Source of the DNA: Neoechinorhynchus agilis
Taxonomy: Eukaryota > Animalia > Acanthocephala
NCBI GenBank assembly: GCA_051530055.1
Contig: CM121341.1
Location: forward strand, 17,028,784 to 17,092,783
Reading direction: 5' to 3'
Length of the DNA stretch: 64,000 nucleotides
The stretch's first letter is position 1. Each line of letters begins with the position of its first letter. Made by a program: the position numbers and the translations under genes. The notes beneath the pieces are model-generated. The model made no database searches and had not been told where the DNA came from. It worked only from the letters and a program-made list of their open reading frames with translations. Of this stretch, positions 9,001 to 62,962 are shown one piece after another.

Positions 9001-11855
9001 TTTTTATTCTCGGTCACAACTCCTGATTTCCATTTGTTGGAATGACGATTCGCAAGTTCGATTTGTTTTTTTGCCATTTTCGTTTTTTCTATTTCGTTGC
9101 TTTGTCTTGTTATCTCACCGGCATAGAAGTTCGCTTTACCGCCTTCTTCTGAGCATTTAAATTTTTTGAGGAATTTATTCTTTTTGTTCAATGGAAACTT
9201 TTTCATTTATTGAAATAAAATGCATTCTTCAATCTAAGTTTTTAGTTTAAATCTCATAATTTGTTTTAGATAAAGGACGGAAATGATGTTCCCGAATTTG
9301 ATTGAATAGTGAAATGTGCCTAAGCGGCCAAATGTGTTCCTCTCGTCTGATCCGTTTCTAGATTTTTCGTTTTTTGCTTCAAGAGTTCATTTCCAATCTA
9401 TATTTTTAATTATTTCTTATACTTTCGCGGCATTTTGATAGATATTTAAATTTTAGTCCTGTTGTAGCGCTTAGATCCAATAAATTAGACTTGCAAGTTT
9501 AGTTCCAATGTTTTTTTCATAGTCTTTATTATGTTATTTAAGTTACTGTACAAGAGTTGGATGCTTTTCAATGATTTTATTTGCTGCTTAATTGACGATG
9601 TCATTGAAACTCAATAGTTCAATGAGTTCGCTTAGCCAATACCACCTTTTTTATGTGTTCTGTTAATGTTTTCGAAAATTCTTGTTTTTTTGCTTTCGGT
9701 TTTAAAATTTTTTCTCATTTCGTCTTGATGAGAAGCCAATAAAATGATATTGAATTCTACTATTCCTGAAATGATTATTTAAAGCTGGAATTACTGTCTG
9801 AAAAATGACGATTTCTTTAAATCTGACCGGACATTTTGATCTAAGTCAAATGATGACCATCTGACGATTCTGAACTTTCGTGACGACATGGGATTGTCTC
9901 GTTCGTCTGATGACCTTGATTAACTTTTCATCCTTTCCGTTGTCGTTTTTACGAAAGGAAATTAATTTTTTAGAGCACTCAAATTTTTTTTATTTGCTCT
10001 TCCAATTAAAGTTCGTTTGGTCGTTTAAAGATAAAGAATGAAAGTGATGATAATGAGTTAAATTGAACATTTAAATGTGCCTAATTTGCCAATTGAACAC
10101 CTCTGTTCTTATTCATTCTCAATTTTTCTTCCCGGTCACAACTGCTGATTGGTATTTGTTGAAATGATGATTCGCAATTACGATTTGTTTTTTGGCATTT
10201 TCGTTTTTTCTATTTCGTTACTTTGTATTGTTATCTGACCGGCGTAGATGTTCGATGGGCCGCCTTCGATTTCTGAGCAATTTAATTTTTTCATCGAATG
10301 AATTCTTTTTGTTCAAGTGAAACTGTTTCATTTATAAAAATAAAATGCATTTTTTAATTTAATTTTTTTGCTTGAATCTCATAATTTGTTTTATATAAAG
10401 GACGGAAATCATGATCTCGAATTTAATTGAAAAGTGAAATGTGCCTAAGCGGCCAAATGTGTTCCTCTCGTCTGATCGGTTTCTGGATTTTTCGTTTTTT
10501 GCTTCAAGATTTCATTTCCAATGTATATTTTTAATTATTTCTTATACGTTCGCGGCATTTTCATAGATATTTAAATCTTAGTCCGGTTGTAGCTTTTAGA
10601 TCCAATAAATTAGACATGCAATTTTAGTTCCAATGTTTTTTCATAGTCTTTATTATGTTTTTAAAGTTACTGTACAAAAGTTGCACGCTTTTCAATTATT
10701 TTATTTGCTGCTTAATTGTGCGATGTCATTGAAACTCAATAGTTCAATGAGTTCGCTTAGGCAATATCACCTTTTTTATGTGTTCTGTTAATGTTTTCGA
10801 AAATTCTTGTTTTTTTGCTTTCGGTTTTAAAAATTTTTCTCATTTCGTCTTGAAGAGAAGCTAATAAAATGATATTGAATTCTACTATTCCTGAAATGAT
10901 TATTTAAAGCTGGAATTACTGTCTGAAAAATGACGATTTCTTTAAATCTGACCGGACATTTTGATCTAAGTCAAATGATGACCATCTGACGATTCTTAAT
11001 TTTCGTGACGACATAGAATTGTCTCGTTCGTCTGATGACCTTTCTAACTTTTACTTCCTTTCCGTTGTCGTTTTTTCGGAAGGAAATTAATTTTTTTAGC
11101 TCTCAAACAATTTTTTATTCGCTCCTCTAACTGAACCTCTTTTAGCCCATTAAAGATAAAAAATGGAAGTGATGATAATGAGTTAAATTGAACATTGAAA
11201 TGAGCCTAATTGGCCAAATAGCACCTCTTGTCTGATTCATTCTCAATTTTTATTCTCGGTCACAACTCCTGATTTCCATTTGTTGGAATGACGATTCGCA
11301 AGTTCGATTTGTTTTTTGCCATTTTCGTTTTTTCTATTTCGTTACTTTGTCTTGTTATCTGACCGGCATAGAAGTTCGCTTTACCGCCTTCTCTTTCTGA
11401 GCATTTAAATTTTTTTGAGGAATTTATTCTTTTTGTTCAATGGAAACTTTTTCATTTATTAAAATAAAATGCATTCTTCAATCTAAGTTTTTAGTTTATA
11501 TCTCATAATTTGTTTTATATAAAGGACGGAAATGATGATCCCGAATTTAATTGAATAGTGAAATGTGCCTAAGCGGCCAAATGTGTTCCTCTCGTCTGAT
11601 CCGTTTCTAGATTTTTCGTTTTTTGCTTCAAGAGTTCATTTCCAATCTATATTTTTAATTATTTCTTATACTTTCGCGGCATTTTTATAGATATTTAAAT
11701 TTTAGTCCTGTTGTAGCTTCATTTCCAATCTATATTTTTAATTATTTCTTATACATTCGCGGCATTTTTATATATATTTAAATTTTAGTCCTGTTGTAGC
11801 GCTTAGATCCAATAAATTAGATATGCAAATTTAGTTCCGATGTTTATTTCATAGT
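1..11855. repeat. ~1.12-kb tandem satellite, about 10.5 copies, runs off the left edge of the window
   Basis: The anchor TTCATTCTCA recurs at 1, 1125, 2252, 3374, 4494, 5617 and onward (period 1120-1127). There are two sequence variants of the segment after TTATCT. The short ORFs listed in this interval are repeat-derived. Confidence 0.98.
11635..11800. repeat. 83-bp local tandem duplication inside the last satellite unit
   Basis: TTCATTTCCAATCTATATTTTTAATT...GTCCTGTTGTAGC occurs at 11635-11717 and again at 11718-11800. Confidence 0.9.
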
Positions 11856-13989
11856 TCGGTTGCCTCTCTCAATTTCTTCGAGAGATCCTGGAGCAGAGAG
11901 AGTGCCGAGCTTCCGAGCGTTCCATACGTCTCTACCCCAAAGGGGACAAAATAGTGAGCCCTCGATAGGTGACGATATTTCCGTCTTTTCCTCCCTTTCG
12001 CTGCACTGGCGGCGGCACCGGCGATTTCGAGGGAGTAGGGGATGTTGCTGGCTGCGAGGGTATCCACACACGTGGCGTCCCAGAGAAGGCATTTGCCCTC
12101 CCGCCACGGGAAGACCGAAGTTCCATCGGGCCTACGGCCGTTTAGTCTACAGAGGTGGGCGTGTTCCAGGATGTTTGGGAAGTTCGCCGTTCTCAACGCC
12201 CGAGAAATTACGTTATTGATTTCAGAATGGCGTGAGAACCTTCCTGCTGACCTTCTGCAGACGAGACCGTGTCGCCCGAAAGCATCAACCAAAGACCCAC
12301 ATCGACAGCGATGGGGAGCGAATGGACAATTCTCTCCATTACGGCATTGACCCATGTTAAAGAGGTAACAAGGACGCGTTAACATCGATCACCAAGTCTT
12401 AAGGATACTACGATCCTCGTTACCTCATCAGTAAGAAGAGTTCCCACTGATGCCAGAGGAACAGCCTGCAACCACGCCCCAGATTCTCGTGTTGAAACTG
12501 CCAACAGTCTTGCTCGGACGACCCCATCGCGAGAACCGGAAAGTAGAGCTGTGAGCTCTCGCGACAAGAGGACCGTCTCAGATCGACTGTCTGAGGCCAT
12601 TCACGGGAACATGGTTAGCGCCTGTCTGCTGGCACCATTCCTCAACCGCCACCACGAAATCCCGGTCTAGACAGAACTTTTCCTTCAAAATGTTCTTCGA
12701 GACTGGTAGGCTCCCCTCAAACGATCCAAGAAAGGCCGGCAAAGCAAGGTCGACTAGTGCCCAAATTCCCAATCCCCCAGATGACACAGGCAAAGAAGCT
12801 TGTCACCACGCCTCATCTGAGAGCTGAACATTTAAAAAACGCTCGAGGCATGCCCTCACCTTATCGTCCAGCTTTGCCAATCCTGTTTTGTGTTTGAAAA
12901 ATGTTGCTGTGCGAACCTTGTACAATAATTTGGGGATGAAGAGCGCGTTCTTTATGAGAAACAAGGCGTCATGAGCCGAGAGAGCGCACACCCTATCGCA
13001 CAGCAACGAAAGTTTCGGTATGATATGGCCGATCTCATCTTCCACATTTGAATCGAAGACGCAACTGCCCAGAAGGCTGAGTTGTTCCCGAGTCACGAGT
13101 TTCAGGCCTGGAGCTACGGCCTCGAACCCAGCCATTAGTTCTTTGACTTTGGCGGCGTCTCCAATATTCAGTACAAGGAGCTCACATTTTCCAGCATTAA
13201 GCTCAATGACCGTCTTCGATGTCTCCCTAAATCAGCGTCTCCAAATCGCGCAGTACAACGGAGGGATCACCTCCGAGCGTAGCGTCATCCAAGTACCAAG
13301 CATTGAAGCTGGAATGGAGAGAATGCGCTATTGGATTTACTGTTAGGGAGAATGCGATTGGACCGGGGAGATCTCCTTTCTGCACTCCTATTTCGGACCA
13401 AATGAGGTGGTCTTCGAAAAGCAAAGAAGTCGCCGTCCCGTAGGCATTGAGAAAATACTGGAAGGCTTCTGGGGCATGATCCCTAATTGCGCGGAACATG
13501 GTTTCTCTATTGAGAGAGTTAAAGGCGTTCCGAAAATCACACTTAAGAATCACGCACGTCTCTGAGCTTCTCGTAGCAAAGTTTCGGAGCGAGCGGACAA
13601 TAGCTTCCGCCCCGCAGGATGTGCAGCAGCCCAGTTGGACTGGACGAAGTTGCTGTCCGGTTTTCTCTGTAATACGTTTGCAGAGAATTTTTCCTGCGAG
13701 TCGGCGTATCGTCGAAGATACGGCGATGGGACGGATCCCACCTTCTTTTTTTGTGAGCGCACACAATGAGGCTCCGAAAAATAGGTCCTTTGCAACGGGG
13801 TTCAGGTCCTCTCCAGTCAGGCGGTCGACTATTCGAGAAAGCGCACTTCCTAGAGAGAGAGCTGCTTCACCAGTTGTAAAGGACATCGTGTCCTTTAGGT
13901 GCTGAGGCCTTAGTCCGTCAAGCCCGTGACCCGAACCATTTGCAAAAGCTGAGATGGCCTTTTTTATCTCTGAAATTTGAGTGGGCGTC
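11856..13989 (-). mobile_element. CRE-clade non-LTR retrotransposon, copy 1 (RT plus restriction-like endonuclease; frameshifted, truncated at both ends)
   Basis: RT motifs GIRPIAV, QLG, ILKCDFRNAFNS, GV.KGD..GP, WYLDD (13227-14036). C-terminal CRCG..D..G.HGL.C, RH..IN, RPDG..VFPW..GK.LLWDATCVDT and FVPFGVET (11849-12385). High identity to copy 2 ends at 13989. Confidence 0.9.
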
Positions 13990-13999
13990 AAAAGGCTAA

Positions 14000-14188
14000 C
14001 AAAATCCCAACTTAAAAAAGCGATCCGCCGCAGCAACGTGCGCCGCGCCGGCTGTTGCGCTCGCTGGCGAGGGGGTGCCCAGTTTCCAATGCAAATCGGT
14101 CAAATGCGATGTTTGTCTTCGTGACTTCAAACCCATTCTCAGTGGTCTCGTGCGCTCCCACGGTCAACATGGGTTGCATCGCCCTTAA
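14000..14188 (+). mobile_element. Inverted fragment encoding a CRE-type N-terminal zinc finger
   Basis: The plus strand reads VKCDVCLRDFKPILSGLVRSHG (14099-14164). This has the same C-x2-C-x12-HG spacing as the N-terminal finger of copy 2 (CPVCGKSYKLTNLG..VHG) but a different sequence and the opposite orientation. Confidence 0.5.
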
Positions 14189-14285
14189 TCCAGAAAACCG
14201 CCAACTCTGCCTGTCTCCCCGTCTTCATTGAATCCAACCGAACTCACAACTGTGGTCACAGACACGAATCGCCCACACCCCATCT

Positions 14286-16850
14286 CGCAACGCCTCCCCA
14301 GCCAAAATAGGATATTGTTTTCGACCGATAGTTCTCCCCTCTTTTCGTAATATGTCCGTAAATCATTCGGAATCACTTCGGGCCATTGTGTCTTGATATA
14401 CCTACACACCCTCGCCAGCACATTATCGTTTCTTAAACTCCGTTTCAACATTTCTGCGTTTATGAGTTTTGAATCGTCACAATCTATTAGATCAATTTCA
14501 TTGGCAAAACTCTCCACTGGTTCATTTGAAACTTCTGGTATTCTTGATAGTGCATCGGCATATACATTCTTTTTGCCTTTCACATATTCGATGGTGTAAT
14601 CATATTCGGCCAACACAATCGCCCATCTTCGCAAAAGGTTACCATGTATCTGATTCAATTCTTTTTTATGTCCGAATATGTTAATCAAAGGTTTGTGATC
14701 GGTCATCAGTCGAAAACTACGTCCGAATAAGAAGTGGTGAAATTTCTTTATTCCAAACAATATCGCCCCGGCTTCTTTATCTATTGTTGAATAATTTTTT
14801 CCGCAGGTGATAAAGTTCTCGCATACGCGATCGTTCTTCAGTTTCTCCCTTCCTGCTGCAAGAGTACTGCCCCAAACCCCACTTCACTCGCATCACACGA
14901 CAGGATCACCTCTTTTTCAGCAGCATACGGCATCAACACTTTCGGATGTTCCATCAACTTTTTCGCTGCCATGAAACTACCTTGTTCTATTTTCCCCCAT
15001 CTCCATGGAATCTTCGAACTGGTCAGTCTACGAAGCGGACTACGCACAGCGTGCAAATGTGGCAAAAATCGTTCATGGTATCCTGCTGCTCCGGGGAAGG
15101 CTCTCGATTGCGTTCGTGTTTTCGGAGGTGGACAATTGATCATTGACCGCAATTTTGCTTGTGGTGCTCTTATTGCCCCCGATTCCCAGATCATCCCTAA
15201 AATCTCAACCTTTTCCTGGAGAAAACAGCATTAGATATTCGTTTATAGTGACTCGAAAATCACCACATACTCTGATCCTGTTATTCGCTTTCTTCATGAG
15301 AACGATCGGTGTGGCCCATTCCAGCGGTTCTCTCGTCGGATCCACTTTCCTTAGAACGCCGATTGCTTGAAGCCTGTTCATCTAATCTTGTAAACATTCA
15401 ACCATCGGAAGAGGAACTCTCCGTGCCGGAAAAAATTTTGGACTCGCATCATCTCTCACTGACAATTCCACTTGATATCCCTTGATTTTCCCCAATTCAT
15501 TCGAAAACAGTTTAGCATATTCCTTCTCTGGTTTCATCTCCATCTGATTTATTGGGGATACCACACCGATCCCCATCCCTTGGTTTCCTCTCCAGGTAGC
15601 ATCTAACTGCACCAGAACTATACCAACAGCACATATCCAATTTAGTCCACACAATGCTCTATCCATGGTTCGCACCACGGCAACTTCGACCATGGCTCGG
15701 CGTCCCTCGAATTCCACCTCCACTTGACCAGTTCCCACAGTGTCGAGTGCCTGTCCACCATATGCTTTTAGGCGAAGACCCTCTCTAAGCGGTTTAGATC
15801 CTAATTGTGTCCAAATCCGCATCGAGACACCAGCACCCGTGTCATATTCCATCTCCACTGATCTTTGATTGACTTTAAGAATTAGCGTCCACTTTTGGTT
15901 TTGTCCAACAGCGTTGATGTTTCTAATCACTTCTTCCTCCTCTCCAATCTGTTTTACCTGCTTGACCTGCGATCGGAAACAATTCCGTGCAAAATGGCCA
16001 AATTTCCCACAGTTGAAACATCTTCCTCCTCGGCTATTTGGAAAGGTCTGAGAGTTTCCTCCTCGAAAAATACACGGCTCGTTGCTCTTATGAACTTTTC
16101 CACATCGATTACAGATGGTTCTTCTTCTTCGATCATCGGCATGATTCCACTTCTCGAAGTTTCTCGCCACTACCCGGTGCAACGTACCTGCATCTTCGTC
16201 CTTCGTTTGTCTTACCTCAGCTATCGCTCGTTCCATTGGGATGCATAGATCTAGGACTTGTTTCATCGATACAATTTTTTTTCCTGTATCCCGTCTGGTC
16301 AACGACACCTTATCTCCGTCTCGATTCGTGCATCGTTCAAACCAATAGCGAAACGATCCCGTAACCGTTCGTCCAAGTTTTCCCCATAGCTACAGCACAC
16401 ACTTAGCGTGCGCAATCGATCTGCAAACTCGTTGAAAGACTCACCATCTTTTCTATTGGCTTTCTCGAACGCAAAACGGGCAGCAAATATTGTCGTAGTT
16501 GGCGTAAGTAGATCGGTCATTGACTGAATAATTTCCTGGTAACCAAGATTACCGACATCCTTAGGAAATACATGCCTTTCCAATTTGCTTAGGTTAGTAT
16601 CACCCATAAACGCCAATAGCAGCATCGCTTTCGCTTCGGACACACGTTTCTCGGTTCCGCAGATACCTTTTAACCATAGGTGTCTTTCGAAACGACGAAT
16701 GTACGTTGTCCATCCTACGCCCGTGGATTCCGAACACGGGTCAAAACGTTTTTTCAAAGCCTGACTAACTGCAAAAACCAAAAACAAAACGTACACACCC
16801 CCAAACATCGTTTGGTCATTATCGATTGGACGCGCAGTGCGTGTCACGAT
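14286..16850 (-). mobile_element. Ty3/Gypsy LTR-retrotransposon remnant (gag, CCHC knuckle, protease, partial RT, RNase H; RT core and integrase missing)
   Basis: Gag FDP..W..Y.RRF; CFNCGKFGHFARNC; protease YDTGA; PARRVP; WATPIV..K....IRVCGDFRVTIN; CDAS..G.GAVL; FRLMTDHKPL; RRWAI.L.EYDY.IEY.KGK.N..ADALSR. No LTR was recognised. Confidence 0.92.
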
Positions 16851-17189
16851 CGCTCACTATATAACAAAAACACAACTGGTGTTAGAGGGGTTATTTCGGA
16901 ATAAAATATTCACATTCATAAACGCTTAAGATATTTGCCTCTAGAGGCTCTCGATTTTTATCTCGCAGAGTCTTTAGTCTTGTTTCCTTCAAAATATATT
17001 AAACTCAAAATCACTAGATTTGGGGGATCAAGTTGATGAACCTTATTACTTTCAATACGACGCTATTTGCTTTTTTCGGAAGCTCTTTTTGCTGTTAATC
17101 CTGTGATTTGTGTTTTTGCATTGCTGTGCGCTATACACGTTACAATCGAGTCGAATTTGTTATGGCGCACGGATATAATAATAAAACGT

Positions 17190-17475
17190 TTATTTGTTAA
17201 AATACAAGGAATAGGATCCATGTACCTTTGGGTCCTCATATGCGCTCGAGTTTAGAGTTCTTCAAAGAATGCGGATGTTGATTATTGAGTATATTACTGT
17301 TTTGGTAGAGTGGGAAGATCCGCTCAGAGGAAGTCCGTTCGGATGGCAATATCCGGTCGGGAGCGAATGGGCGGTAACAGTTTGTTGGAGAGCTTGCGAG
17401 GGCGGCATTTCCTCCGTTCATTTCCTGTCATACTATTCAAAAAGATTCGGCAGTATTCAAAAGGGAGCGCCAGTA
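17190..17475 (-). mobile_element. 3' end fragment of an L2/Daphne-like LINE
   Basis: Similar to 61570-61690. Carries the GGATCCA-TGTACCTT-TGGGTCC stem-loop (17214-17235), followed on the minus strand by AATAAA. Confidence 0.55.
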
Positions 17476-17678
17476 TAAGGAGCTGATTATATCAAAAGTG
17501 ATAAAAGATCACCATTAAGTCCCAGTTCGTTGCGATAACTTGATTTCGCCGTCAATCTGGAAGCTAAAGAACGCACCTCACAATTCTACCGACGATAACT
17601 CTTGCGAATATACGAACGCTTTCAGCATTTCATTGATAGTTTAAATTGCGGCGAATCCAACAAATAAAATAAATTTTA

Positions 17679-17717
17679 TTGAAATATTTCGCGAAGAAGC
17701 CTCGCCTCATCAGTCAA
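17679..17717 (-). ncRNA. Minimal type I hammerhead ribozyme motif (Penelope type)
   Basis: The minus strand reads TTGA CTGATGA G GCGAG GCTTC TTCGC GAAA TA T T TCAA. Stem I is TTGA/TCAA, the core is intact, stem II is 5 bp, stem III is the palindrome ATAT, and the predicted cleavage triplet is AUU. AATAAA overlaps the 3' end. Confidence 0.7.
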
Positions 17718-17764
17718 CAAAAAAAGGTTTTAGTAGTTTTGTGTTGTATAGATCGGGTGAACGG

Positions 17765-20700
17765 GATCGCCCTTTCCGAAGTCCGAGAACGGATGCCCGA
17801 TCGTGCCTCTTCGTTGGGTTGCGCTTTTCATTCATTTTTAACACGTCGTTGGTCATTAGTTTTAAGAGAAAGTTTTGCTTCCTTCCTTGATGTTGGACGC
17901 AGTGATGCGTAAATCCGTCTTCCTACGTTTTGTTCCTTCTCCATAAAATGCGTGATCGCCATTTCCGAAATTCGAGAACGGATGCCCGCTTGTACCTCTT
18001 CGTTGTCTTGCGCTTTTCATTCATTTTATACACGTCGTTGGTCGGTAGTTTTAAGAGAAAGTTTTGCTTCCATCCATGGTGTTGGACCCAGCGATGTGTA
18101 AATCCGTCTTCCTACGTTTTGTTCCTTCGCCATAAAATGCGTGATCGCCATTTTCGAAATTCGAGAACGGATGCCCGCTTGTACCTCTTCATTGTGTGTT
18201 GTTTTTCATCAATTATTAACAAGTCGCTGGCCAGTAGTTTTAAGCAAAAGTTTTGCTTCCTTCCATGATGTTGGAGGCAGCCATATGTAAATCCGTCTTC
18301 CTACGTTTTGTTCCTTCTCCATAAAATGCGGCATTGCCATTTAAGAAATTTGAGAACGGATGCCCGCTCGTACCTCTTCGTTGTGTTGCGCGTTTCATTC
18401 ATTTTTAACACATCGTTGGTCGGTAGTTTTAAGCAAACGTTTTGCTTCCATCCATGATGTTGTACCCAGCGATTTGTAAATCCGTCTTCCTACGTTTTGT
18501 TCCTGCTCCATAAAATGCGACATTGCCATTTTCGAAGTGCGAGAACGGATGCCCGATCGTGCCTCTTCGTTGTGTTGCGCTTTTCATTCATTTTTAATAC
18601 GTCGTTGGTCAGTAGTTTTAGGCAACAGTTTTGCTTCGATCCATGATGTTGGACCCAGCGATGTGTAAATCCGTCTTCCTACGTTTTGTTCCTTCCCCAT
18701 AAAATGCGGCATTACCATTGTCGAAGTCCGAGAGTGGATGTCCGCTCGTACCGCTTCGTTGTGTTGCGTTTTTCATCAATTATTAACACGTCGCTGGTCA
18801 GTAGTTTTGAAAAATTTTTTGCCCTCATCCATGATGTTGGACCCAGCGATGTGTAAATTCGTGTTCCTACGTTTTGTTTTTACTCCATAAAATGCGTGAT
18901 CGCCATTTCCGAAGTTCGAGAACCGGTGCCCGCTCGTAATTCTTGGTTGTGCTGCGCTTTTCATTAATTTTTAACACGTCGCTGGTCAGTAGTTTTGAAA
19001 AAAATTTTGCCCTCATCCATGATGTTGGACGCAGCGATGTGTAAATCCGTCTTCCTACGTTTTGTTCCTTCTCCCTAAAATGCGGCATTGCCATTTTCGA
19101 AGTCCGAGAACGGATGTCCGTTCGTACCTCTTCGTTGTGTTGCGCTTTTCATTCATTTTTAACATGTCGCTGGTCCGCAGTTTAAGCAAAAGTTTTGCTT
19201 CCATCCATGATGTTGGAGGCAGCCATGTGTAAATCCGTCTTCCTACGTTTTGTTCCTTCTCCATAAAATGCGAGATTGCCATTTTCGAAGTCCGAGAACG
19301 GATGCCCGCTCGTACCGCTTCGTTGTCTTGCGCTTTTCATTCATTTTTAACACGTCGCGGGTCTGTAGTTTTAAGAGAAAGTTTTGCTTCCATCCATGGT
19401 GTTGGACCCAGCGATGTGTAAATCCGTCTTCCTGCGTTTTGTTCCTTCTCCATAAAATGCGTGATCGCTATTTTCGAAGTCCGAGAACGGATGCCCGCTC
19501 GTACCTCTTCGTTGTGTTGCGCTTTTCATTCATTTTTAACACCTCGTTGGTCGGTAGTTTTAAACAAAAGTTTTGCTTCCATCCATGATGTGGGACCCAG
19601 CGATGTGTAAATCCATTTTCCTACGTTTTGTTCCTTTTCCATAATATGCGTGATCGCCATTTCCGAAATTCGAGAACGGATGCCCGCTCGTACCTCTTCG
19701 TTGTGTTGCGCTTTTCATTCATTTTTAACACGTCGCTGGTCTGTAGTTTTAACAAAAAATTTTGCTTCAATCCATGATGTGGGACCAAGCGATGTGTTAA
19801 TCCGTCTCCGAACGTTTTGTTCCTTCTCCATAAAATGCTAGATTGCCATTTTCGAAGTCCGAGAACTGATGCCCGCTCGTACCACTTCGTTCTCTTGCGC
19901 TTTTCATTCATTTTTAACACGTCGTTCGTCAGTTGTTTCAAGCAAAATTTTGCTTCCATCCATGATGTTGGACCCAGCGATGTGAAAATCCGTCTTCCTA
20001 CGTTTTGTTCCTTCTCCATAAAATGCGGGATCACCATTTCCGAAATTCGAGAACGGATGCCCGCTCGTACCTCTTCGTTGGGTTGCGCTTTTCATTCATT
20101 TTTAACACGTCGTTGGTCAGTAGTTTTAAGAGAAAGTTTTGCTTCCTTCCTTGATGTTGGACGCAGTGATGCGTAAATCCGTTTTCCTACGTTTTTGTTC
20201 CTTCTCCATAAAATGCGTGATCGCCATTTCCGAAATTCGAGAAGGATGCCCGCTTGTACCTCTTCGTTGTGTTGCGCTTTTCATTTATTTTTAACACGTC
20301 GTTGGTCTGTAGTTTTAACAGAAAGTTTTGCTTCAATCCATGATGTGGGACCAAGCGATGTGTTAATCCGTCTGCGAACGTTTTGTTCCTTTTCCATAAA
20401 ATGCGACATTGCCATTTTCGAAGTCCGAGAACGGATGCCCGCTCGAACCACTTCGTTGTCTTGCGCTTTTCATTCATTTTTTAAAACGTCGTTGGTCAGT
20501 AGTTTTTAGAGAAAGTTTTGCTTCCTTCCTTGATGTTGGACGCAGTGATGTGTAAATCCGTCTTCCTACGTTTTGTTCTTTCTCCATAAAATGCGAGATT
20601 GCCATTTTCGAAATTCGAGAACGGATGCCCGCTCGTACCACTTCGTTGTCTTGCGCTTTTCATTCATTTTTAACACGTCGTTGGTCAGTAGTTTTAAGAG

Positions 20701-21494
20701 AAAGTTTTGCTTCCTTCCTTGATGTTGGACGCAGTGATGCGTAAATCCGTCTTCCTACGTTTTGTTCCTTCTCCATAAAATGCGGGATCACCATTTCCGA
20801 AATTCGAGAACGGATGCCCGCTCGTACCTCTTCGTTGGGTTGCGCTTTTCATTCATTTTTAACACGTCGTTGGTCAGTAGTTTTAAGAGAAAGTTTTGCT
20901 TCCTTCCTTGATGTTGGACGCAGTGATGCGTAAATCCGTCTTCCTACGTTTTGTTCCTTCTCCATAAAATGCGTGATCGCCATTTCCGAAATTCGAGAAC
21001 GGATGCCCGCTTGTACCTCTTCGCTGTCTTGCGCTTTTCATTCATTTTTAACACGTCGTTGGTCGGTAGTTTTAGGAGAAAGTTTTGCTTCCATCCATGA
21101 TGTTGGAATCAGTGGTGTGTAAATCCGTCTCCCTACGTTTTGTTCCTTCTCCATAAAATGCGAGATTGCCATTTTCGAAGTCCGAGAACTGATGCCCGCT
21201 CGTGCCTCTTCGTTGTGTTATGCTTTTCATTCATTTTTAACACGTCGTTGGTCAGTTGTTTCAAGCAAAATTTTGCTTCCTTCCATGATGTTGAGCGAAG
21301 TGATGTGTAAATCCGTCTTCCTACGTTTTGTTCCTTCTCTATAAAATGCGACATTGCCATTTTCAAAGTCCGAGAACGGATGCCCACTCGTACCTCTTCG
21401 TTGTGTTGCGGTTTTCATTCATTTTTTAGACGTCGCTGGTCAGAAGTTTTAAGCAAAAGTTTTGCTTCCTTCTATGATGTTGGACGCAGCGATT
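17765..21494. repeat. 189-bp tandem satellite, about 20 copies
   Basis: The anchor AAATCCGTCTTCC occurs at 17911, 18100, 18289, 18478 and onward (period 189). Monomers differ by many substitutions, with more homogeneous copies at about 20500-21000. Confidence 0.98.
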
Positions 21495-21539
21495 GGCGAT
21501 CCCACGCTCCCGATCTATACAATACAAAACAATTTTTAA

Positions 21540-21590
21540 GTGACTGATGAAGTACGGCTTTCTCTTTCGAAATATTTGAATTCAATAAAA
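21540..21590 (+). ncRNA. Degenerate hammerhead motif in the right inverted repeat
   Basis: GTGA CTGATGA AGTACGGCTTTCTCTTTC GAAA TA T T TGAATTC AATAAA. The core is intact but stems I and II are poorly paired. Confidence 0.45.
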
Positions 21591-21609
21591 TGTATTTTAT
21601 CCATGTGAT

Positions 21610-24480
21610 TTTTTTCTTAAAAGATTATATTTTTAACACATTAAACAATCTGTTTGAAGCACACTCACCACCTCCCGCCAAATTCCAGCTTTTGTCCTTC
21701 CTCGACCGTCGCCATCACGCTGGCAACATTGCCTCGTTGTACTGCCAGCGAGATATTTTGTCGAAGGAATACGCCTGCTCTTGAGTCTCCGGTCGTTTCT
21801 CTCAATTTCTTCGAGAGATCCAGGAGCAGAGTGAGTGCTGGGGGCGTGCATATCGGGAGACCAAGTCTTAAGGATACTGCGATCCTCGTTACCTCATCAG
21901 TAAGAAGAGTTCCCACTGATGCCAGAGGAACAGCCTCCAACCACGCCCCAGATTCTCGTGTTTAAACTGCCAACAGTCTAGCTCGGACGACCCCATCGCG
22001 AGAACCTGAAAGTAGAGAGCTGTGAGCTCTCGCGACAAGAGGTCCGTCCCAGATCGACTGTCTGAGGCCATTTACGGGAACATAGTTAGCGCCTGTCTGC
22101 TAGCACCATTCCTCAACCGCCACCACGAAATCTAGGTCAAGACAGAACTTTTCCTTCAAAATTTTCTTCGCTATAGATTGACTCCCGTCATACGATCCAA
22201 GAAAGGCTGGCAAGGCAAGGTCTACACTAGCACCCGAATGCCCAATCCCTCAGATGACACAAGCAAAGAAGCTTGTCGCAACGCCTCATCTGAGAGCTGG
22301 GCATTTAAAATACGCTCGAGACAAGCCCTCACCTTGCCGTCGAGCTTAGCCAATCCTTCCTTATGTTTGAAAAATGTTGCTGTGCGAACCTTGTACAATA
22401 ATTTGGGGATGAAGAGCGCGTTCTTTATGAGAAACAAGGCTTCATGAGCCGAGAGAGCGCTCACCCTATCTCACAGCAACGAAAGTTTCGGTATGATATG
22501 ACCGATCTCATCTTCCACATTTTAATCGAAGACGCAACTGCCCAGTAGGCTGAGTTGCTCCCGAGTCACGAGTTTCAGACCTGGAGCTACGGCCTCGAAC
22601 CCAGCCATTAGTTCTTTGACTTTGGCGGCGTCTCCAATATTCAATACAAGGAGCTCACATTTTCCAGCATTGAGCTCAATGCCCATCTTCGAGGTCTCCC
22701 TAACCAGCGTCTCCAAATCGCGCAGTACAACGGAGGGATCACCTTCGAGCGCAGCGTCATCCAAGTACCAAGCGTTGAAGCTGGAATGGAGAGAATGCGC
22801 TATTGGATTTACTGTTAGGGAGAATGCGATTGGACCGAGGAGATCTCCTTGCTGCACTCCTATTTCGGACCAAATGAGGTGGTCTTCGAAAAGCAAAGAA
22901 GTCGCCGTCCCGTAGGCATTGAGAAAATACTGGAAGGCTTCTGGGGCATGATCCCTAATTGCGCGGAACATGGTTTCTCTATTGAGAGAGTTAAAGGCGT
23001 TCCGAAAATCACACTTAAGAATCACGCACTTCTCTGAGCTTCTCGTAGCAAAGTTTCGGAGCGAGCGGACAATAGCTTCCGCCCCGCAGGATGTGCAGCA
23101 GCCCAGTTGGACTGGACGAAGTTGCTGTCCGGTTTTCTCTGTAATACGTTTGCAGAGAATTTTTCCTGCGAGTCGGCGTATCGTCGAAGATACGGCGATG
23201 GGACGGATCCCACCTTCTTTTTTTGTGAGCGCACACAATGAGGCTCCGAAAAATAGGTCCTTTGCAACGGGGTTCAGGTCTCTCCAGTCAGGCGGTCGAC
23301 TATTCGAGAAAGCGCACTTCCTAGAGAGAGCTGCTTCACCAGTTGAAAAGGACATCATGTCCTTTAGGTGCTGAGACCTTAGTCCGTCAAGCCCATGACC
23401 CTAACCATTTGCAAAAGATGAGATGGCCTTTTGTAACTCTGAAATTTGAGTGGGCGTCCTGTCTTGTATGGGAGGAGATGGAATTTCAAAACTTCCGCTA
23501 CTACATGGTTGCTTCGACCGGAGTATTTGTAGCGTCTCGCTGTCTCCTTTTGCGAAACTGTCGGAGGATGACAATAACCGAACAGCCCCCCGAACATCTC
23601 CGTCCGCAAGCTTCGAAGAGACACGTTCAGTCAGTGATCGCTTTGAAAAACGGCAGCGAAACTCTTCCTTCGTGCGTCCCTTACGAACCTCGCGGAGATT
23701 CCTTTCAAAATCGTTAAATATTTGTTCAAAGGAGGCTAACCTTTCCTTGATTGTTGATGTCAAAGACACCCCAGAATCACCGCTGGTGTAGAGGACTAAG
23801 CGCGGGAAAGCGACGAGCCGTGTCCATGATGGCTCACAGCTCCTTTGAAGGCAACCGTTGGCCAATCCCGTAAATGATTTGGCGACCAGATATCGCGCGC
23901 CTTTAGGTATCCGTTTCAGGACGTTCCTGGGCAGAAACCGCACAATATCAGGTATCGAAATAGAATCAGTTGTGATCTGAGGGGTCTCAGACACGAAAGG
24001 TTCGGTTAATTGTGGCGGAGAACCAGACCCGTTACAGCAGAGATCCCGGGGACCATGGACAAACAAAACCCCAAATTGGTTAATTTATAAGACTTACCGC
24101 AAACCGGACACAAACCAGCAGAGACGCGTGGGAGCCCGGCAGCGTTGATCTTCTCAGGTTGATCATGATCGATAAGTGGCGCGTTCAAATTATCTACGTC
24201 AGCAGCGTCGATTGTAGGCGATTTGAACACATTGTGACGTAATTTGGAATTTCGGCGAAACCTATCCGATGCTGAGATCGTAATGAGCCTTCTTGCAGGT
24301 ATAGGGCTGGGAGGTGAATCTGATCCGTCGCTATATCCATCGTCTGATTTCCTCGTATTCGTTCCGTCAATTTCCATTGTTTCGCGGGATTTCGTAGTTT
24401 TAGTCTGTAATCCGCTGCTTGCAAGCTTTTTCAACTTTTGTTTGTTGAAATCTTTCTACTTGCTTGTAAGTTTTTAAATA
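21610..24480 (-). mobile_element. CRE-clade non-LTR retrotransposon, copy 2 (near full length, frameshifted, endonuclease core deleted)
   Basis: N-terminal finger CPVCGKSYKLTNLG/VHGP, KRIPKGAR, RT (22522-23358, WYLDD) and C-terminus FLRQNISLAVQRGN.ASV. LGLPICTP joins directly to ALTLLLDLSKK, deleting the HGLVC..RPDG..FGVET block present in copy 1. Confidence 0.9.
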
Positions 24481-37612: not shown

Positions 37613-38060
37613 TAATTTTGGTGAACATACTCCCGGTCATAACCTATTTGATTTTAATTTATTGGAAATATTTCGAGAGGTAACATCGCCTCATTAGTCA
37701 TCTAAAAATGAGTTTTACACATTAAGGTTTTAAGCTCGAGTGCGCGGGATCCTCAAACCTGAAGTTCGGGGACCAATTATCCGCTCGAACCCCCTGCGCT
37801 GTACTACGTTTTTTCCATGATTTTATTATTGATTTTTAACACGTCACTGGCTGAAGGTTTCAATTTAAAATTAGCTTTATTTCCTTTCACTGTGTTGGAC
37901 GTAGCGATGTGTAAAGCCTCCAAAACAAGCCGCCTTTTTAAGATTTGTTATGTGTAAAACTCATTTTTAGATGACTGATGAGGCGAGGTTACCTCGCGAA
38001 ATATTTCCAATAAATCAAAATTAAATAGGTTGCGACCGGGATTATGTTTACCAAAATTAC
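37613..38060. mobile_element. Foldback-like element: ~110-bp hammerhead-bearing inverted repeats enclosing one diverged 189-bp monomer
   Basis: 37613-37721 versus the reverse complement of 37951-38060 (5 mismatches over the inner 81 bp). The interior (37745-37915) retains GCGGGATC, CCGCTCG.ACC, TTTTTAACACGTC..TGG and TGTTGGACG.AGCGATGTGTAAA of the 189-bp unit. Confidence 0.82.
37971..38014 (+). ncRNA. Minimal type I hammerhead ribozyme motif
   Basis: ATGA CTGATGA G GCGAGG TTA CCTCGC GAAA TA T T TCC AATAAA. The core is intact, stem II is a perfect 6 bp, stem III is ATAT, and stem I is only 2 bp. Confidence 0.6.
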
Positions 38061-52291: not shown

Positions 52292-54011
52292 CGTTTAGAT
52301 AGCTGTCGATGAAGACGATCTGAAACGAAATAGCGGCTTATATTGTCGCTCTCGAAAGTCACGGGGTATTATTTTAGACTTTTGTGATGATGAAAAGTAT
52401 CGTGTTTGTGTGGGGTTGTTTTTAGTAGGCGTTGAACGAGCGACAAGTTTTTAGTGAGGTTTCTTAAGCTACGTACGAAAATCTTCATGGAAGGGCGACG
52501 GGGATATGAAGGCAATAATCGAATTTTAGGCGACCAGGTATTACTGTAAATCTGCATTCCATAATTTGAAGCATTTGAGTGTTTCTTCAATGTCACAATA
52601 TACGTTTTTTAAAAAACGATGTAGAAGTAACGATTTCTTCTATGTGATGATTCCGAATCCACCATTAGAAAAATGAGAGGCACATAGATGAACAATCAAA
52701 CGATATTTTTGAGTGTAATACATCATTAAAAATCAAACCTGCGTACAAATGTTGTGATTTATCGGTTTAAATTTAAAAGTGTTCCGGATTTGGCCTAGTA
52801 GCGTCTTTATAAATATCGGAAATTCAAAATTTCAATTGATCACCACAGATTTTAGACCCAACAAGTCTTCGTTCAATCCTTTATGAACACTATAACTCAT
52901 TGAATAAGGTACTATATTAAACCAAAGCAACCTTTTCGTCGTCGGCCGAAATGTCAAACAAAGGATAATACGGTAGTTAGATCTTGGACCTTTATCTATT
53001 CTAGCAAACTCTAATGCATATAAAAAGACTGCATTTTTCTGCGTATTTAGAGCGCTATGGGTTCCTTTCGGTCTGTTGGAAATGAAAAAGAGGAATTTCT
53101 CGAAAATAACCAAGACCTTCTTCATTAAGAGAAAACCCACGACCAAACGAGCGTGTAGAATATTAATCACACCAGTACTTAAGTCATCGGAATGCTGTTT
53201 ATCCAATCAGAGCGTCCGGGGCCTTCGCCAGGCATATGTCCCATTAATCAAAGCGCATGGCATCCTGGGAGAAAATGTGACATTAGGAAAAAGGATGTGT
53301 AAATACCTAAGAAGGCGACATCTTTGTCTTTTCGCAAGCGGATAGATATTCGGTTTAGTACGTTTTAAGAATTAAAGAGACAATTTACAAGGTTAAAACA
53401 GAAATCTACCGAGTAAGAGGGTTTTAGGTAGACAAGTGAAGACGTGCTCCCTCTTTCTTGACAGGCTTTCGCTTTGTAATCAAGTTATAGACGGGTCAAA
53501 CGAGAGTAAAAGCGATAGAAATGTTGAAACCTATAAATCACTGATTTCAATTAAAAGGTTCTGGTGAGAAGATTTAAATACGAAGTGGAAGATGGTGATT
53601 ATCGAGAGAAAAAAACAGTGGAGAATCGATATAAAACTCAGCTAGAACCTGCAGCTTTTGGAAATGTCGTCTGTCTAACTAACCTCTGGCCCAGTCTGTC
53701 AAGATTATAGTGGTGATATCATATTCGGCAGGCAGTTTGGAATCACAGAGTCCGATTGCAGGCAAGCAAAAGAAGTCCAGTGCACTCTAAAAGAGAATGC
53801 GTCGTTAAAGCAGCTTGAAAGATGGTAACCCTCTGGCACGACAGAAACGGATATGGGACCAGTGTCCCTTTTATAAGCCGTTTAGCAGTAGTGAATCCGC
53901 GTAGCCCGTTAGATTCCATCCTTTACAAGCAATCGAATTGATAAATTTAGAATTGTGGTGAAGACACTCATGGTTAAAATGTATTTTAGAATTGTGGTGA
54001 GTGTTTTTCGC

Positions 54012-54276
54012 TTATTTGAAATATTTCGAAAGAGGTAAGCTCGCCCCATCAGTCATACCGCAATTCTAATGTGATTTTCCCCGAAGAAAGAGTAAAACTT
54101 CGAAATATCGGTCATTAATAAACATTTGTTTCAACCGCGGAAATTGCTTAAATAACAACAATTGAAACGATAACATGCGGTTGAGAAATCAGTCGACAAT
54201 CCACCAACTGATCTTTAAGAAGTATTTTATTGCTAAGAAATATTTCGAAAGAGGAAGCTTCGCCTCATCAGTCATT
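54012..54276. mobile_element. Cluster of three decayed hammerhead-like motifs
   Basis: Minus 54012-54056 (TGACTGATGGGGCGAGC..TTTCGAAATATTTCAAATAA), plus 54079-54120 (CCCCGAAGAAAG..CTTCGAAATATCGG..AATAA) and minus 54224-54276 (TGACTGATGAGGCGAAGC..TTTCGAAATATTTC..AATAAA). Confidence 0.55.
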
Positions 54277-62520: not shown

Positions 62521-62930
62521 CGTTTGAGGAGATGAATTTTAAAAGTGTTGTGCTTGAAGGGGAAAAATTAATCATCAATAGAAAATCGTTCGGGGTCATA
62601 GAGTCGAAGTTTTATCGTTATGTACTATTATGTGAATGTTCATTCTACGATCTAGAATACATCGTCGATTTTAAAGGAAAAAATCATCTTCTATTAAAAT
62701 GTTGTAGCTTATGCTTTAAAAACTGAAAGATTATCGATAAAAAGGGTCAAAAAGGGTCGATCAGACACAACGAGTTTTTGTTTTTGGAGTTTGGTGATCA
62801 TAATACCGGACAGAAAATGTTGAATTGAATTGAAATATTGCATTGATCCAGCAAGGAAATGCCGTCAGCGTAAGGATGACTGCTGCGCCGATTTGATTCT
62901 TTATAAAAAATCAGCATACCAACTAAAACG

Positions 62931-62962
62931 TTTTAGATGACTGATCAGGCGAGGTTTATTCG
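62931..62962 (+). ncRNA. 5' half of a hammerhead-type arm interrupted by a CRE fragment
   Basis: TTTTAGATGACTGATCAGGCGAGGTT matches TTTTAGATGACTGATGAGGCGAGGTT at 37965 with one mismatch. Confidence 0.6.

Follow-up and report, generated by a model that had tools for sequence, protein, structure and literature searches.

A 189-bp tandem array between inverted hammerhead-bearing arms in Neoechinorhynchus agilis: probable origin from one insertion of a Penelope-like element derivative

Introduction

How does a tandem array come to lie between two ribozyme-bearing arms that both point away from it? The question is raised by a locus of the acanthocephalan Neoechinorhynchus agilis, situated in a stretch of 64,000 nucleotides (GCA_051530055.1, contig CM121341.1, positions 17,028,784 to 17,092,783 of the forward strand; hereafter, the window). 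A preliminary description, made from the sequence of the window, interpreted the locus as a non-autonomous foldback element derived from Penelope-like elements (PLEs), carrying a satellite as cargo in a layout regarded as undescribed. Here, the arms, the hammerheads, and the array are examined in the context of the whole genome.

Results and Discussion

Organization of the locus

The array has a period of 189 bp and comprises 19.8 copies with 88% matches and zero indels (Tandem Repeats Finder), corresponding to the approximately 20 monomers first described. Pairwise identity among the monomers ranges from 79 to 99%, with a mean of 88%, and no higher-order period is found in the pairwise monomer comparison. 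ORFs of up to 138 aa cross the array, which follow from a 189-bp unit being equal to 63 codons. The array is flanked by two arms, found as collinear inverted segments; the inverted pair of the preliminary description is real, and its length is approximately 110 bp rather than 107 bp, extending a few bases past the ends originally given. As also described, both arms face outward and read CTGATGA, helix II, GAAATATT, and then AATAAA. Arm-to-arm alignment gives 81% column identity with three indels, and by family comparison the arms are 79% identical. Beyond the right arm, the flank turns into a LINE-like fragment at approximately 21660. The coordinates are collected in Table 1.

Table 1. Features of the locus, its sister element, and the endonuclease-hammerhead pairs of the genome
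Feature	Position	Strand	Basis
Left arm, 3' end of the main copy, running unbroken into the body (monomer 1)	17661..17771	-	Family profile and BLAST
AAUAAA poly(A) signal, 2 nt past the predicted left cleavage site	17675..17680	-	Sequence reading
Intact PLE-type minimal type I hammerhead: CUGAUGA, unpaired G, 6-bp helix II, GAAA, UAUU	17683..17713	-	Sequence reading and fold
Array of 19.8 tandem 189-bp units without hammerhead	17765..21493	-	Units collinear with family body directly 5' of arm
Rightmost 189-bp unit, partial	21353-21493		
Right arm, inverted and 5'-truncated short copy of the element's tail	21491..21602	+	Family model positions 187-304
Decayed hammerhead, core boxes kept, helix II lost	21544..21576	+	Sequence reading, alignment and fold
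AATAAA of the right arm	21584..21589	+	Sequence reading
Sister element, head to head, one body unit	37614..38057	.	Same family in window; profile and fold
Sister element, main copy	37958-37614	-	
Sister element, inverted short copy, intact hammerhead at 37975-38005	37958-38057	+	
GIY-YIG match / hammerhead	C1:321552/321193	same strand	By coordinates
GIY-YIG match / hammerhead	C1:620599/620368	same strand	By coordinates
GIY-YIG match / hammerhead	C1:5902118/5902371	same strand	By coordinates
GIY-YIG match / hammerhead	C1:6483916/6483578	same strand	By coordinates
GIY-YIG match / hammerhead, arms' own helix II type	C1:13955305/13955721	same strand	By coordinates

Structure of the two hammerheads

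On the minus strand, the left arm reads CTGATGA-G-GCGAGG-CUU-CUUCGC-GAAA-UAUU/UCAAUAAAA, the slash marking the predicted cut between 17683 and 17682. Helix II follows the unpaired G and is formed by GCGAGG/CUUCGC over 6 bp (-5.5 kcal/mol). In the minimum-free-energy fold of the arm, it stands beside a 9-bp helix I (17714–17722 paired with 17674–17682) that is private to this copy, the relatives having 1–4 bp. Helix III is represented by the palindromic 15.1–16.1 stretch GAAA-UAU-U, in which AUAU is self-complementary and the loop is absent. In both arms, the CUGANGA and GAAA boxes are present in the correct order and spacing. In the right arm, a helix II closed by G10.1–C11.1 is not foldable (0.0 kcal/mol), and a 5-nt insertion follows GAAATATT. 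The distinction first drawn between a complete left and a decayed right hammerhead is therefore retained.

Two copies of the left hammerhead are computed to cofold at -32.9 kcal/mol, compared with 2 × -14.1 kcal/mol singly. According to these folds, the left hammerhead appears intact in structure, although its helix III could form only with a second sense copy, and the right one is probably dead. Since a minimal hammerhead without helix III needs such a second copy, and a transcript of the locus holds only one sense copy in all, the self-cleavage in cis that had been suggested for the 3' end of a transcript is not expected. Published minimal hammerheads cleave poorly even as dimers (PMC4209133). 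The other RNA property originally put forward, folding back of a transcript, agrees with the computed pairing of the arms in read-through RNA, at -100 kcal/mol compared with -29 ± 5 kcal/mol for shuffles. The Rfam hammerhead models, which had been proposed as a check, give no match on either arm in 15000–24000 at E ≤ 10; because these models require helix III, the miss is expected and is uninformative for motifs without it.

Across the 46-Mb genome, the motif CTGANGA-N10-26-CGAAATATTTC has 565 matches, compared with 2 when the pattern is reversed as a control. The helix II subfamilies differ by fully compensated changes (GCGAGG/CCUCGC, GCAAGG/CCUUGC, GUGAAC/GUUCAC, and GUCCA/UGGAC). In addition, conservation is 0.90 in the core columns and 0.78 in the rest of the arm (P = 0.006), and contigs from other copies match the left arm over 17680–17716 only, which is the ribozyme; the hammerhead is the best-conserved part of the arms. 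Judged by this conservation, the PLE-type hammerhead appears to be a real, selected motif.

Affiliation with Penelope-like elements

In this genome, tails of the same kind stand directly behind the GIY-YIG endonuclease ORFs of PLEs. One locus (L057) contains an RVT_1 ORF and, behind it on the same strand, a GIY-YIG ORF; in three others (L062, L063, and L064), hammerheads stand directly after endonuclease ORFs. Furthermore, at each of the five loci of Table 1 a hammerhead follows a GIY-YIG match of the same strand on its 3' side, at a distance of 230–420 nt, PLE copies whose hammerhead is of exactly the type in the arms being placed by coordinates only. The tail context TTTTTAGAT..GA-CTGANGA...GAAATATTTCA is common to the arms and to tails of coding PLEs.

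Meanwhile, both arms belong to one dispersed family. BLAST recovers at least 49 relatives of the left arm across the genome, and the family profile (nhmmer) aligns its model positions 2–305 to 17949–17661 on the minus strand. Both arms end at the same family position, 304/305, approximately 20 nt before the family consensus ends on its 3' side, where a PLE-type insertion would have a 30–40 bp tail at one end. The CAATAAAAT block is kept in most family copies. In the profile search, most copies are solo, one-ended, and variably 5'-truncated, with match starts ranging from model position 2 to 249. Sequence comparison thus shows the arms as the probable 3' ends of a dispersed, non-coding, PLE-derived family, in line with the proposed origin from PLE tails with a PLE-type minimal type I hammerhead and an AUU site beside the poly(A) signal.

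Between the arms, no RT/GIY-YIG ORF is present, and in the array tblastn with the endonuclease ORFs gives no match; as had been proposed, the element is thus a non-autonomous derivative and not a PLE proper. The same tblastn gives a weak match (E 0.003–0.02) in the sister element at 37861–37944. The family DNA profile recovers no PLE coding region, and a derivation of the monomer from a decayed endonuclease coding end, suggested by that weak match and unconfirmed by the DNA profile, is unproven.

The short non-coding element bounded by terminal inverted repeats also resembles an ordinary DNA-transposon MITE, whose terminal repeats would look like a hammerhead by chance. Such an origin is extremely improbable. 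The excess of the motif over its control, the compensated helix II changes, the core conserved above its flanks, the position behind GIY-YIG ORFs, the one-ended 5'-truncated copies, and the failure to find a fixed target duplication all argue against it. The preliminary description had itself associated an ordinary DNA transposon with unconserved core nucleotides, and because these nucleotides are conserved, the explanation is refuted on those terms.

The array as family sequence

The 189-bp monomer aligns collinearly with the body of the family itself, immediately 5' of the arm, and no core boxes or arm homology are found within the units. The monomer is homologous to an internal segment of a transposable element and is present in many head-to-tail copies, as in satellites derived from such elements. 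On these alignments, the supposed cargo is not foreign, the monomer being the body of the same family. When arm and monomer are searched separately through the genome, as had been recommended, the arm proves dispersed, and the array of 189-bp units, with its flanking arms, is found at one locus only; no second locus in the assembly holds even a dimer. The array is therefore local and not a genome-wide satellite.

An inverted arrangement is common in the same family. The family profile reveals at least seven further head-to-head pairs beyond the studied locus, with abutting pairs in the loci L004, L006, L022, L028, and L051 and, within the window, at 37958 and 62840/62915. Among the matches listed, hammerhead pairs within 5 kb are outward in 9 cases and inward in 2, and one outward pair (C1:620368/622424) brackets a 422-aa GIY-YIG ORF. 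The young head-to-head pairs have the same subfamily on both sides.

These data bear directly on the proposal of a distinct non-autonomous foldback element, in which inverted ribozyme arms would act as functional termini of a satellite cargo, the whole moving and expanding as a unit. Inverted arms and array are both real, a single-unit version with the same arms exists in the sister element, and the arms can pair in read-through RNA. However, the array is confined to one locus, the monomer is the element's own body, and the solo copies with variable 5' truncation indicate reverse transcription from the 3' end, not terminal-repeat excision; moreover, the inverted layout is already known for PLEs (PMC8557442). 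A foldback element with cargo is accordingly very unlikely, and the associated idea of arms and satellite spreading together is not upheld.

One insertion or several events

We consider it probable that a small non-coding PLE derivative inserted here once, long ago, and that its own 189-bp body segment was later multiplied at the site. A PLE reverse transcriptase/endonuclease would have primed cDNA on both strands of a cut target. The longer product, on the minus strand, would be the main copy, with its 3' end as the left arm; the shorter, inverted product would be the right arm. Slippage or unequal exchange in the DNA would then have amplified the body segment, and because some unit pairs are 96–99% alike, compared with the mean of 88%, turnover of the array is probably still going on. 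The hammerheads would be the inherited baggage of the tail.

The similarities of the arms are compatible with a single event: identity to the copy L002 is 85% for one arm and 83% for the other, against 79% between the arms, and the GATCTATAC signature is common to both arms and to L002 and L003. Neither the target-site duplication nor the empty site that the preliminary description had proposed to look for is found: no convincing direct repeat flanks the unit in the flanks examined, and a search through the flanks gives no paralogous empty site.

Alternatively, a solo copy grew the array, and a short 5'-truncated opposite copy later inserted in or beside it, with loss of the sequence beyond. 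In its favor, the arms are only 79% identical and the indels inside helix II differ between them, which leaves room for two separate insertions, and the window holds several further fragments of this PLE-derived family, indicating frequent insertion here. Furthermore, the rightmost unit of the array is incomplete, lacking approximately 47 nt. Because these 47 nt are genuine family sequence, a single 5'-truncated progenitor does not explain the full units, and more than one order of events may therefore have led to the right array junction. However, abutting head-to-head pairs are common, with one subfamily on both sides in the young ones, the arms share the L002 sub-lineage signature and the stop point, and no monomers are found to the right of the right arm. 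A history of two events is, on balance, unlikely.

A further alternative places the origin of the array at the RNA or cDNA stage, through repeated jumps of the reverse transcriptase or a multimeric template, so that the array was born with the insertion. At its 5' end, the main copy begins with an incomplete unit, as a 5'-truncated multimeric cDNA would, the inverted copy begins at model position 187, within approximately 8 nt of the unit junction GGCGATC, and tandem arrays of PLE tails exist elsewhere in this genome (periods of 201, 206, 245, and 410 bp). Those arrays repeat the whole tail with its ribozyme, whereas the 189-bp array does not; moreover, the range of unit identity, including recent local duplicates, means that DNA-level turnover is certainly acting, and the lack of even a dimer of this unit at a second locus again speaks against this origin, which is distinctly unlikely.

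Comparison with known systems

A hallmark of PLE insertions is that the main copy is abutted by a 5'-truncated one in inverted orientation, so that inverted repeats surround the unit (PMC8557442), and pseudo-LTR or inverted-repeat structures have been reported (Evgen'ev & Arkhipova 2005; Craig et al. 2021, PMC8557442). Opposite-strand pairs of minimal hammerheads, separated by 100–700 bp, have been known since 2014 (Cervera & de la Pena, PMC4209133). The claim of an undescribed layout cannot be maintained beside these publications. In addition, a PLE protein cuts both strands of its target in vitro and extends them (PMC11167929). The locus resembles such insertions in its outward ends, each the 3' end of a copy, in the hammerhead near the 3' end with variable 5' truncation, and in abutting head-to-head junctions that are frequent in the same genome. 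It differs in lacking an internal RT/GIY-YIG ORF, its body being non-coding family sequence, and in the amplification of one 189-bp body segment approximately 20 times between the ends.

Similarly, the left arm agrees with the published PLE minimal hammerhead (PMC4209133) in the CUGANGA and GAAA boxes, the unpaired nucleotide between A9 and 10.1, the long helix II closed by G10.1–C11.1, and the absence of a helix III loop with a palindromic UA at 15.2/16.2; the family shares with it the short helix I and the opposite-strand pairs. By comparison, the predicted helix I of the left arm, at 9 bp, is unusually long, owing to private changes.

Animal non-LTR retrozymes (Cervera & de la Pena 2020, PMC7229834; Li et al. 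2026 preprint, 10.64898/2026.07.22.740005) are likewise non-autonomous and consist of tandem units, a few hundred bp long, that are tied to PLE pseudo-LTRs. Retrozymes carry a hammerhead in every unit, enabling unit-length cleavage and circularization, whereas the 189-bp units carry none, the hammerheads being in the flanking arms only. True retrozymes are also present in this genome, among them the 245-bp units at C1:427137-435235. Because the array is at one locus only and without ribozymes, the locus is neither a mobile foldback-plus-satellite nor a retrozyme array.

In Tetris/foldback elements of Drosophila, an internal segment between inverted ends is reportedly expanded into a tandem array, and in the MITE- or Helentron-borne satellites of bivalves, an internal segment of a transposable element is likewise expanded between inverted ends. 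The ends of all these elements are terminal repeats of DNA transposons, and their arrays are carried to many loci. In contrast, the ends of the present locus are retroelement 3' tails and its array is at a single locus.

Biological implications

The depth over monomer 1 is 69–113 in three runs, approximately 4–10 in a fourth, and approximately 3 in unique flank, these runs being contigs of unrecorded type that carry no RNA ends, strand, or cleavage signal; the excess may reflect either transcription or a difference in copy number. There is a small chance that the array was born through template jumps of the PLE reverse transcriptase at GGCGATC during the twin-end event, and that it is perhaps present as poly(A)+ RNA ended by the AAUAAA of the arms, at levels varying between worms. 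If so, a telomerase-related enzyme would seed a satellite directly. The role of the reverse transcriptase in array building and the transcription of the array are worth a short look, since directional poly(A)+ data for 74 individual worms of this species are publicly available (BioProject PRJNA1223661, PMC12690905).

The layout is largely known, the ribozyme-bracketed satellite being the sum of two ordinary processes, namely the scar of a head-to-head PLE insertion and the local tandem growth of the inserted segment. The locus adds one more documented tandem array from PLE-derived sequence, in a compact acanthocephalan genome where PLE tails, twin insertions, and ribozyme-bearing arrays can be compared together.

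Inverted arms around the 189-bp array

The preliminary description, in which tandem 189-bp units lie between inverted arms with an intact left and a decayed right hammerhead, is borne out by the array call, the arm alignment and the folds, which agree. A single array occupies 17765–21493, with a period of 189, 19.8 copies, 88% matches and zero indels (Tandem Repeats Finder); cut in register, it yields 19 complete units plus a partial one. The units show pairwise identities of 79–99% (mean 88%) and are 86–96% identical to their own consensus; in-register pairwise comparison gave no higher-order period among them, and recent duplicates are seen in units 13/17 (99%), 11/14 and 15/16 (both 96%). 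On both strands, several units are crossed by open frames as long as 138 aa (17930–20509), and no protein similarity was found for them. Long open frames run through the array because 189 nucleotides equal 63 codons, and they are probably a by-product of this period.

The array flanks are inverted repeats; their collinear segments align with three indels and a column identity of 81%. Along the minus strand, the left-arm sequence consists of CUGAUGA, a single unpaired G, GCGAGG-CUU-CUUCGC, GAAA and UAUU, followed by UCAAUAAAA; its free-energy fold has 9 bp in helix I and 6 bp in helix II. Cleavage is predicted between 17683 and 17682, with AAUAAA (17680–17675) two bases on. Helix I has only 1–4 bp in the relatives, the 9-bp version being private to the left-arm copy. 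In the right arm, both boxes are kept, helix II is lost, and five additional bases follow GAAATATT; judged from its sequence, this hammerhead copy appears dead. Rfam hammerhead models gave no match to either arm, which is unsurprising because the motif lacks helix III.

Arms, hammerhead-bearing arrays and endonuclease–hammerhead pairs (C1, a contig of the assembly)
Feature	Position	Strand	Basis
Left arm	17661–17771	minus	family profile
Right arm	21491–21602	plus	family profile
Hammerhead-bearing array, 245-bp units	C1:427137–435235		
Hammerhead-bearing array, 206-bp units	C1:5586831–5587277		
Hammerhead-bearing array, ~201-bp units (locus L009)	C1:1201630–1203321		
GIY-YIG/hammerhead pair	C1:321552/321193	same strand	coordinates
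GIY-YIG/hammerhead pair	C1:620599/620368	same strand	coordinates
GIY-YIG/hammerhead pair	C1:5902118/5902371	same strand	coordinates
GIY-YIG/hammerhead pair	C1:6483916/6483578	same strand	coordinates
GIY-YIG/hammerhead pair, helix II type of the arms	C1:13955305/13955721	same strand	coordinates

A dispersed family with a conserved hammerhead tail

The assembly searched has 102 contigs, three of them large, and totals 46,219,100 bases; the published N. agilis assembly has 46.2 Mbp in 102 contigs, three of them major (PMC12690905). By BLAST, at least 49 relatives of the left arm were recovered in this genome from 153 candidates. The pattern CTGANGA-N10-26-CGAAATATTTC has 565 genome matches, compared with 2 for the pattern read backwards, and the exact helix II type of the arms has 29, compared with none in the control. 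Helix II carries compensated pair changes between subfamilies (GCGAGG/CCUCGC, GCAAGG/CCUUGC, GUGAAC/GUUCAC and GUCCA/UGGAC), while the closing G-C pair and the unpaired base after A9 are kept across them. Among 36 aligned arm copies, conservation is 0.90 in the core columns and 0.78 elsewhere in the arm (P = 0.006), and helix II departures are mostly G-C to G-U. Sequencing contigs from other copies match the left arm over 17680–17716 only, which corresponds to the ribozyme. The arms thus belong to a dispersed family with the ribozyme as its conserved core. The hammerhead evidence fits the minimal hammerhead of Penelope-like elements (PLEs) reported by Cervera and de la Pena (PMC4209133).

Further fragments of the family lie in the window at 53950–54056, 54217–54276, 62792–62840 and 62915–62962, including a tail copy with a '...CTCTTTC' helix II variant (54239–54271) and a small head-to-head remnant (62.8–62.96 kb).

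The genome also holds many GIY-YIG matches, with 327 candidates, 150 of which scored over the cut-off. Locus L057 carries an RVT_1 ORF and, downstream of it on that strand, a GIY-YIG ORF. In L062, L063 and L064, endonuclease ORFs end in ...NKADYKLNLR.PPD..., directly followed by a hammerhead of the same design, and the lead-in TTTTTAGAT..GA is common to these hammerheads and the arms. By coordinates only, a hammerhead lies 230–420 nt downstream of a GIY-YIG match on the same strand at five C1 loci; roughly 0.1 such pairs would be expected by chance among the matches listed. L063 (C1:5900618–5903740) holds a 5'-truncated PLE end with a GIY-YIG ORF and a hammerhead at 1754–1786, adjoining an SGT1-like host gene (TPR, CS and SGS domains); a full non-coding family copy follows tail to tail on the opposite strand (2287–2001).

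Head-to-head pairs

Among the pattern matches listed, nine pairs within 5 kb face outward (left minus, right plus) and two have the opposite sense; both members of each pair belong to the same subfamily, and the outward pair C1:620368/622424 encloses a 422-aa GIY-YIG ORF. By profile, abutting head-to-head pairs occur at L004, L006, L022, L028 and L051, among about 30 independent family loci, and within the window at 37958 and 62840/62915. The remaining copies are solo, with start points spread over positions 2–249 of the family profile, as is characteristic of reverse transcription that begins at the 3' end. PLE insertions are known for strong 5' truncation and partial tandems, and an inverted, 5'-truncated copy often lies beside the 5' end, placing inverted repeats around the unit (Craig et al., PMC8557442). 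Outward-facing pairs are the norm in this genome, and the layout matches that PLE description exactly. The inverted-ribozyme-plus-satellite layout, for which no described element was initially known, was in its inverted-copy part already published for PLEs, and opposite-strand minimal hammerheads 100–700 bp apart were also noted (PMC4209133). Frangieh et al. found that a purified PLE protein cuts both strands of its target and extends them (PMC11167929), which offers a mechanism for twin insertions.

A single-unit twin of the arms' family lies at 37614–38057. Its minus-strand main copy has a mutated hammerhead (CTAATGA), and its 100-bp inverted copy has an intact one at 37975–38005; the twin's arms are 92% alike and reach ~50 bp past AATAAA. 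The endonuclease ORFs gave a weak tblastn match to 37861–37944, minus strand (E 0.003–0.02).

Origin of the unit and order of events

In a genome search, a two-unit query found tandem copies at this locus only; elsewhere, ~100–150 bp of the unit lie directly upstream of an arm (for example at C1:16973253, C3:4465690, C3:2640838 and C1:14982521). When nine family copies were aligned to two units plus the left arm, the whole 189-bp unit was collinear with the family body, which runs further 5' in longer copies; the element is at least ~450 nt long (L002 compared with L024). Being collinear with the body and tandem at one locus, the array is an internal segment repeated in place. Consequently, the units are not satellite cargo, and of the initial interpretation the PLE-derived, non-autonomous copy stands, but the foldback element carrying cargo does not. 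The locus is probably a non-coding PLE derivative inserted as a PLE-type twin, whose own body gave rise to a local satellite free of ribozymes; the kind is already known, and this case was found once.

Core-box search found no ribozyme boxes in the units, and a retrozyme array was rejected on that ground; the retrozyme-like arrays of this genome, in contrast, carry a PLE-type hammerhead in every unit. Separately, PLE 3' ends form a tandem array with a period of ~410 bp at L064 (C2:5204799–5213238); an open frame of 134 aa with the GIY-YIG motif takes up nearly the whole of each unit, and a CUGAAGA...GAAAAUUU hammerhead closes it.

The arms are 85% and 83% identical to their nearest relative (L002/L003, ~60 kb away) and 79% to each other, and the signature GATCTATAC is common to both arms and L002/L003 only. 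These sequence identities are consistent with one event followed by ~10% change per side, and the similarity of units to their consensus indicates that most of the growth roughly coincided with that event or followed it, and still continues. The right end of the array is a partial unit, and its missing ~47 nt are genuine family sequence present in all other units. The right junction must therefore reflect at least 1.75 units when it formed, later remodelling, or a separate insertion of the right arm; two events, with array copy and right arm inserted separately, are a less likely alternative. The inverted copy starts at model position 187, at most ~8 nt from the unit junction GGCGATC, by chance or perhaps because the reverse transcriptase prefers to switch there; the same proximity would fit an array made at the cDNA stage, a less likely alternative to repetition in place.

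A nest of retroelements surrounds the locus: two minus-strand copies of a LINE-like RT element (11844–14036 and 21633–24066), which agree at 91% across 440 bp, and a gag-protease-RT fragment of LTR type (14185–16847).

Ribozyme function and transcription

Lacking helix III, a minimal hammerhead depends on a second copy in sense orientation. RNA transcribed from either strand of this locus has one sense and one antisense copy; hence, cis cleavage is not expected, contrary to the potential self-cleavage site at the 3' end first proposed. Published minimal hammerheads cleave weakly even as dimers (PMC4209133). The proposed fold-back into dsRNA is computationally possible, as the arms in read-through RNA could pair at a predicted –100 kcal/mol, where shuffled sequences gave –29 ± 5 and a perfect duplex –194; such pairing follows from any inverted repeat.

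Over 16400–18000, we compared four runs (X1–X4) from one 2025 study, of unrecorded type, as contigs without ends or strand. Depth across the units (17787–18000) was 150–900 in three runs and ~4–10 in the fourth, exact monomer-1 contigs had depths of 69–113 and ~4–10, respectively, and the unique flank 17426–17641 had about 0–3 in all four. The N. agilis study sequenced directional poly(A)+ RNA of 74 single worms (PMC12690905), so the runs are probably RNA. The depth differences are a lead toward variable transcription or copy-number polymorphism: as RNA, the runs would point to array transcription that varies and stops close to the left arm; as DNA, to an array copy number that differs between worms.
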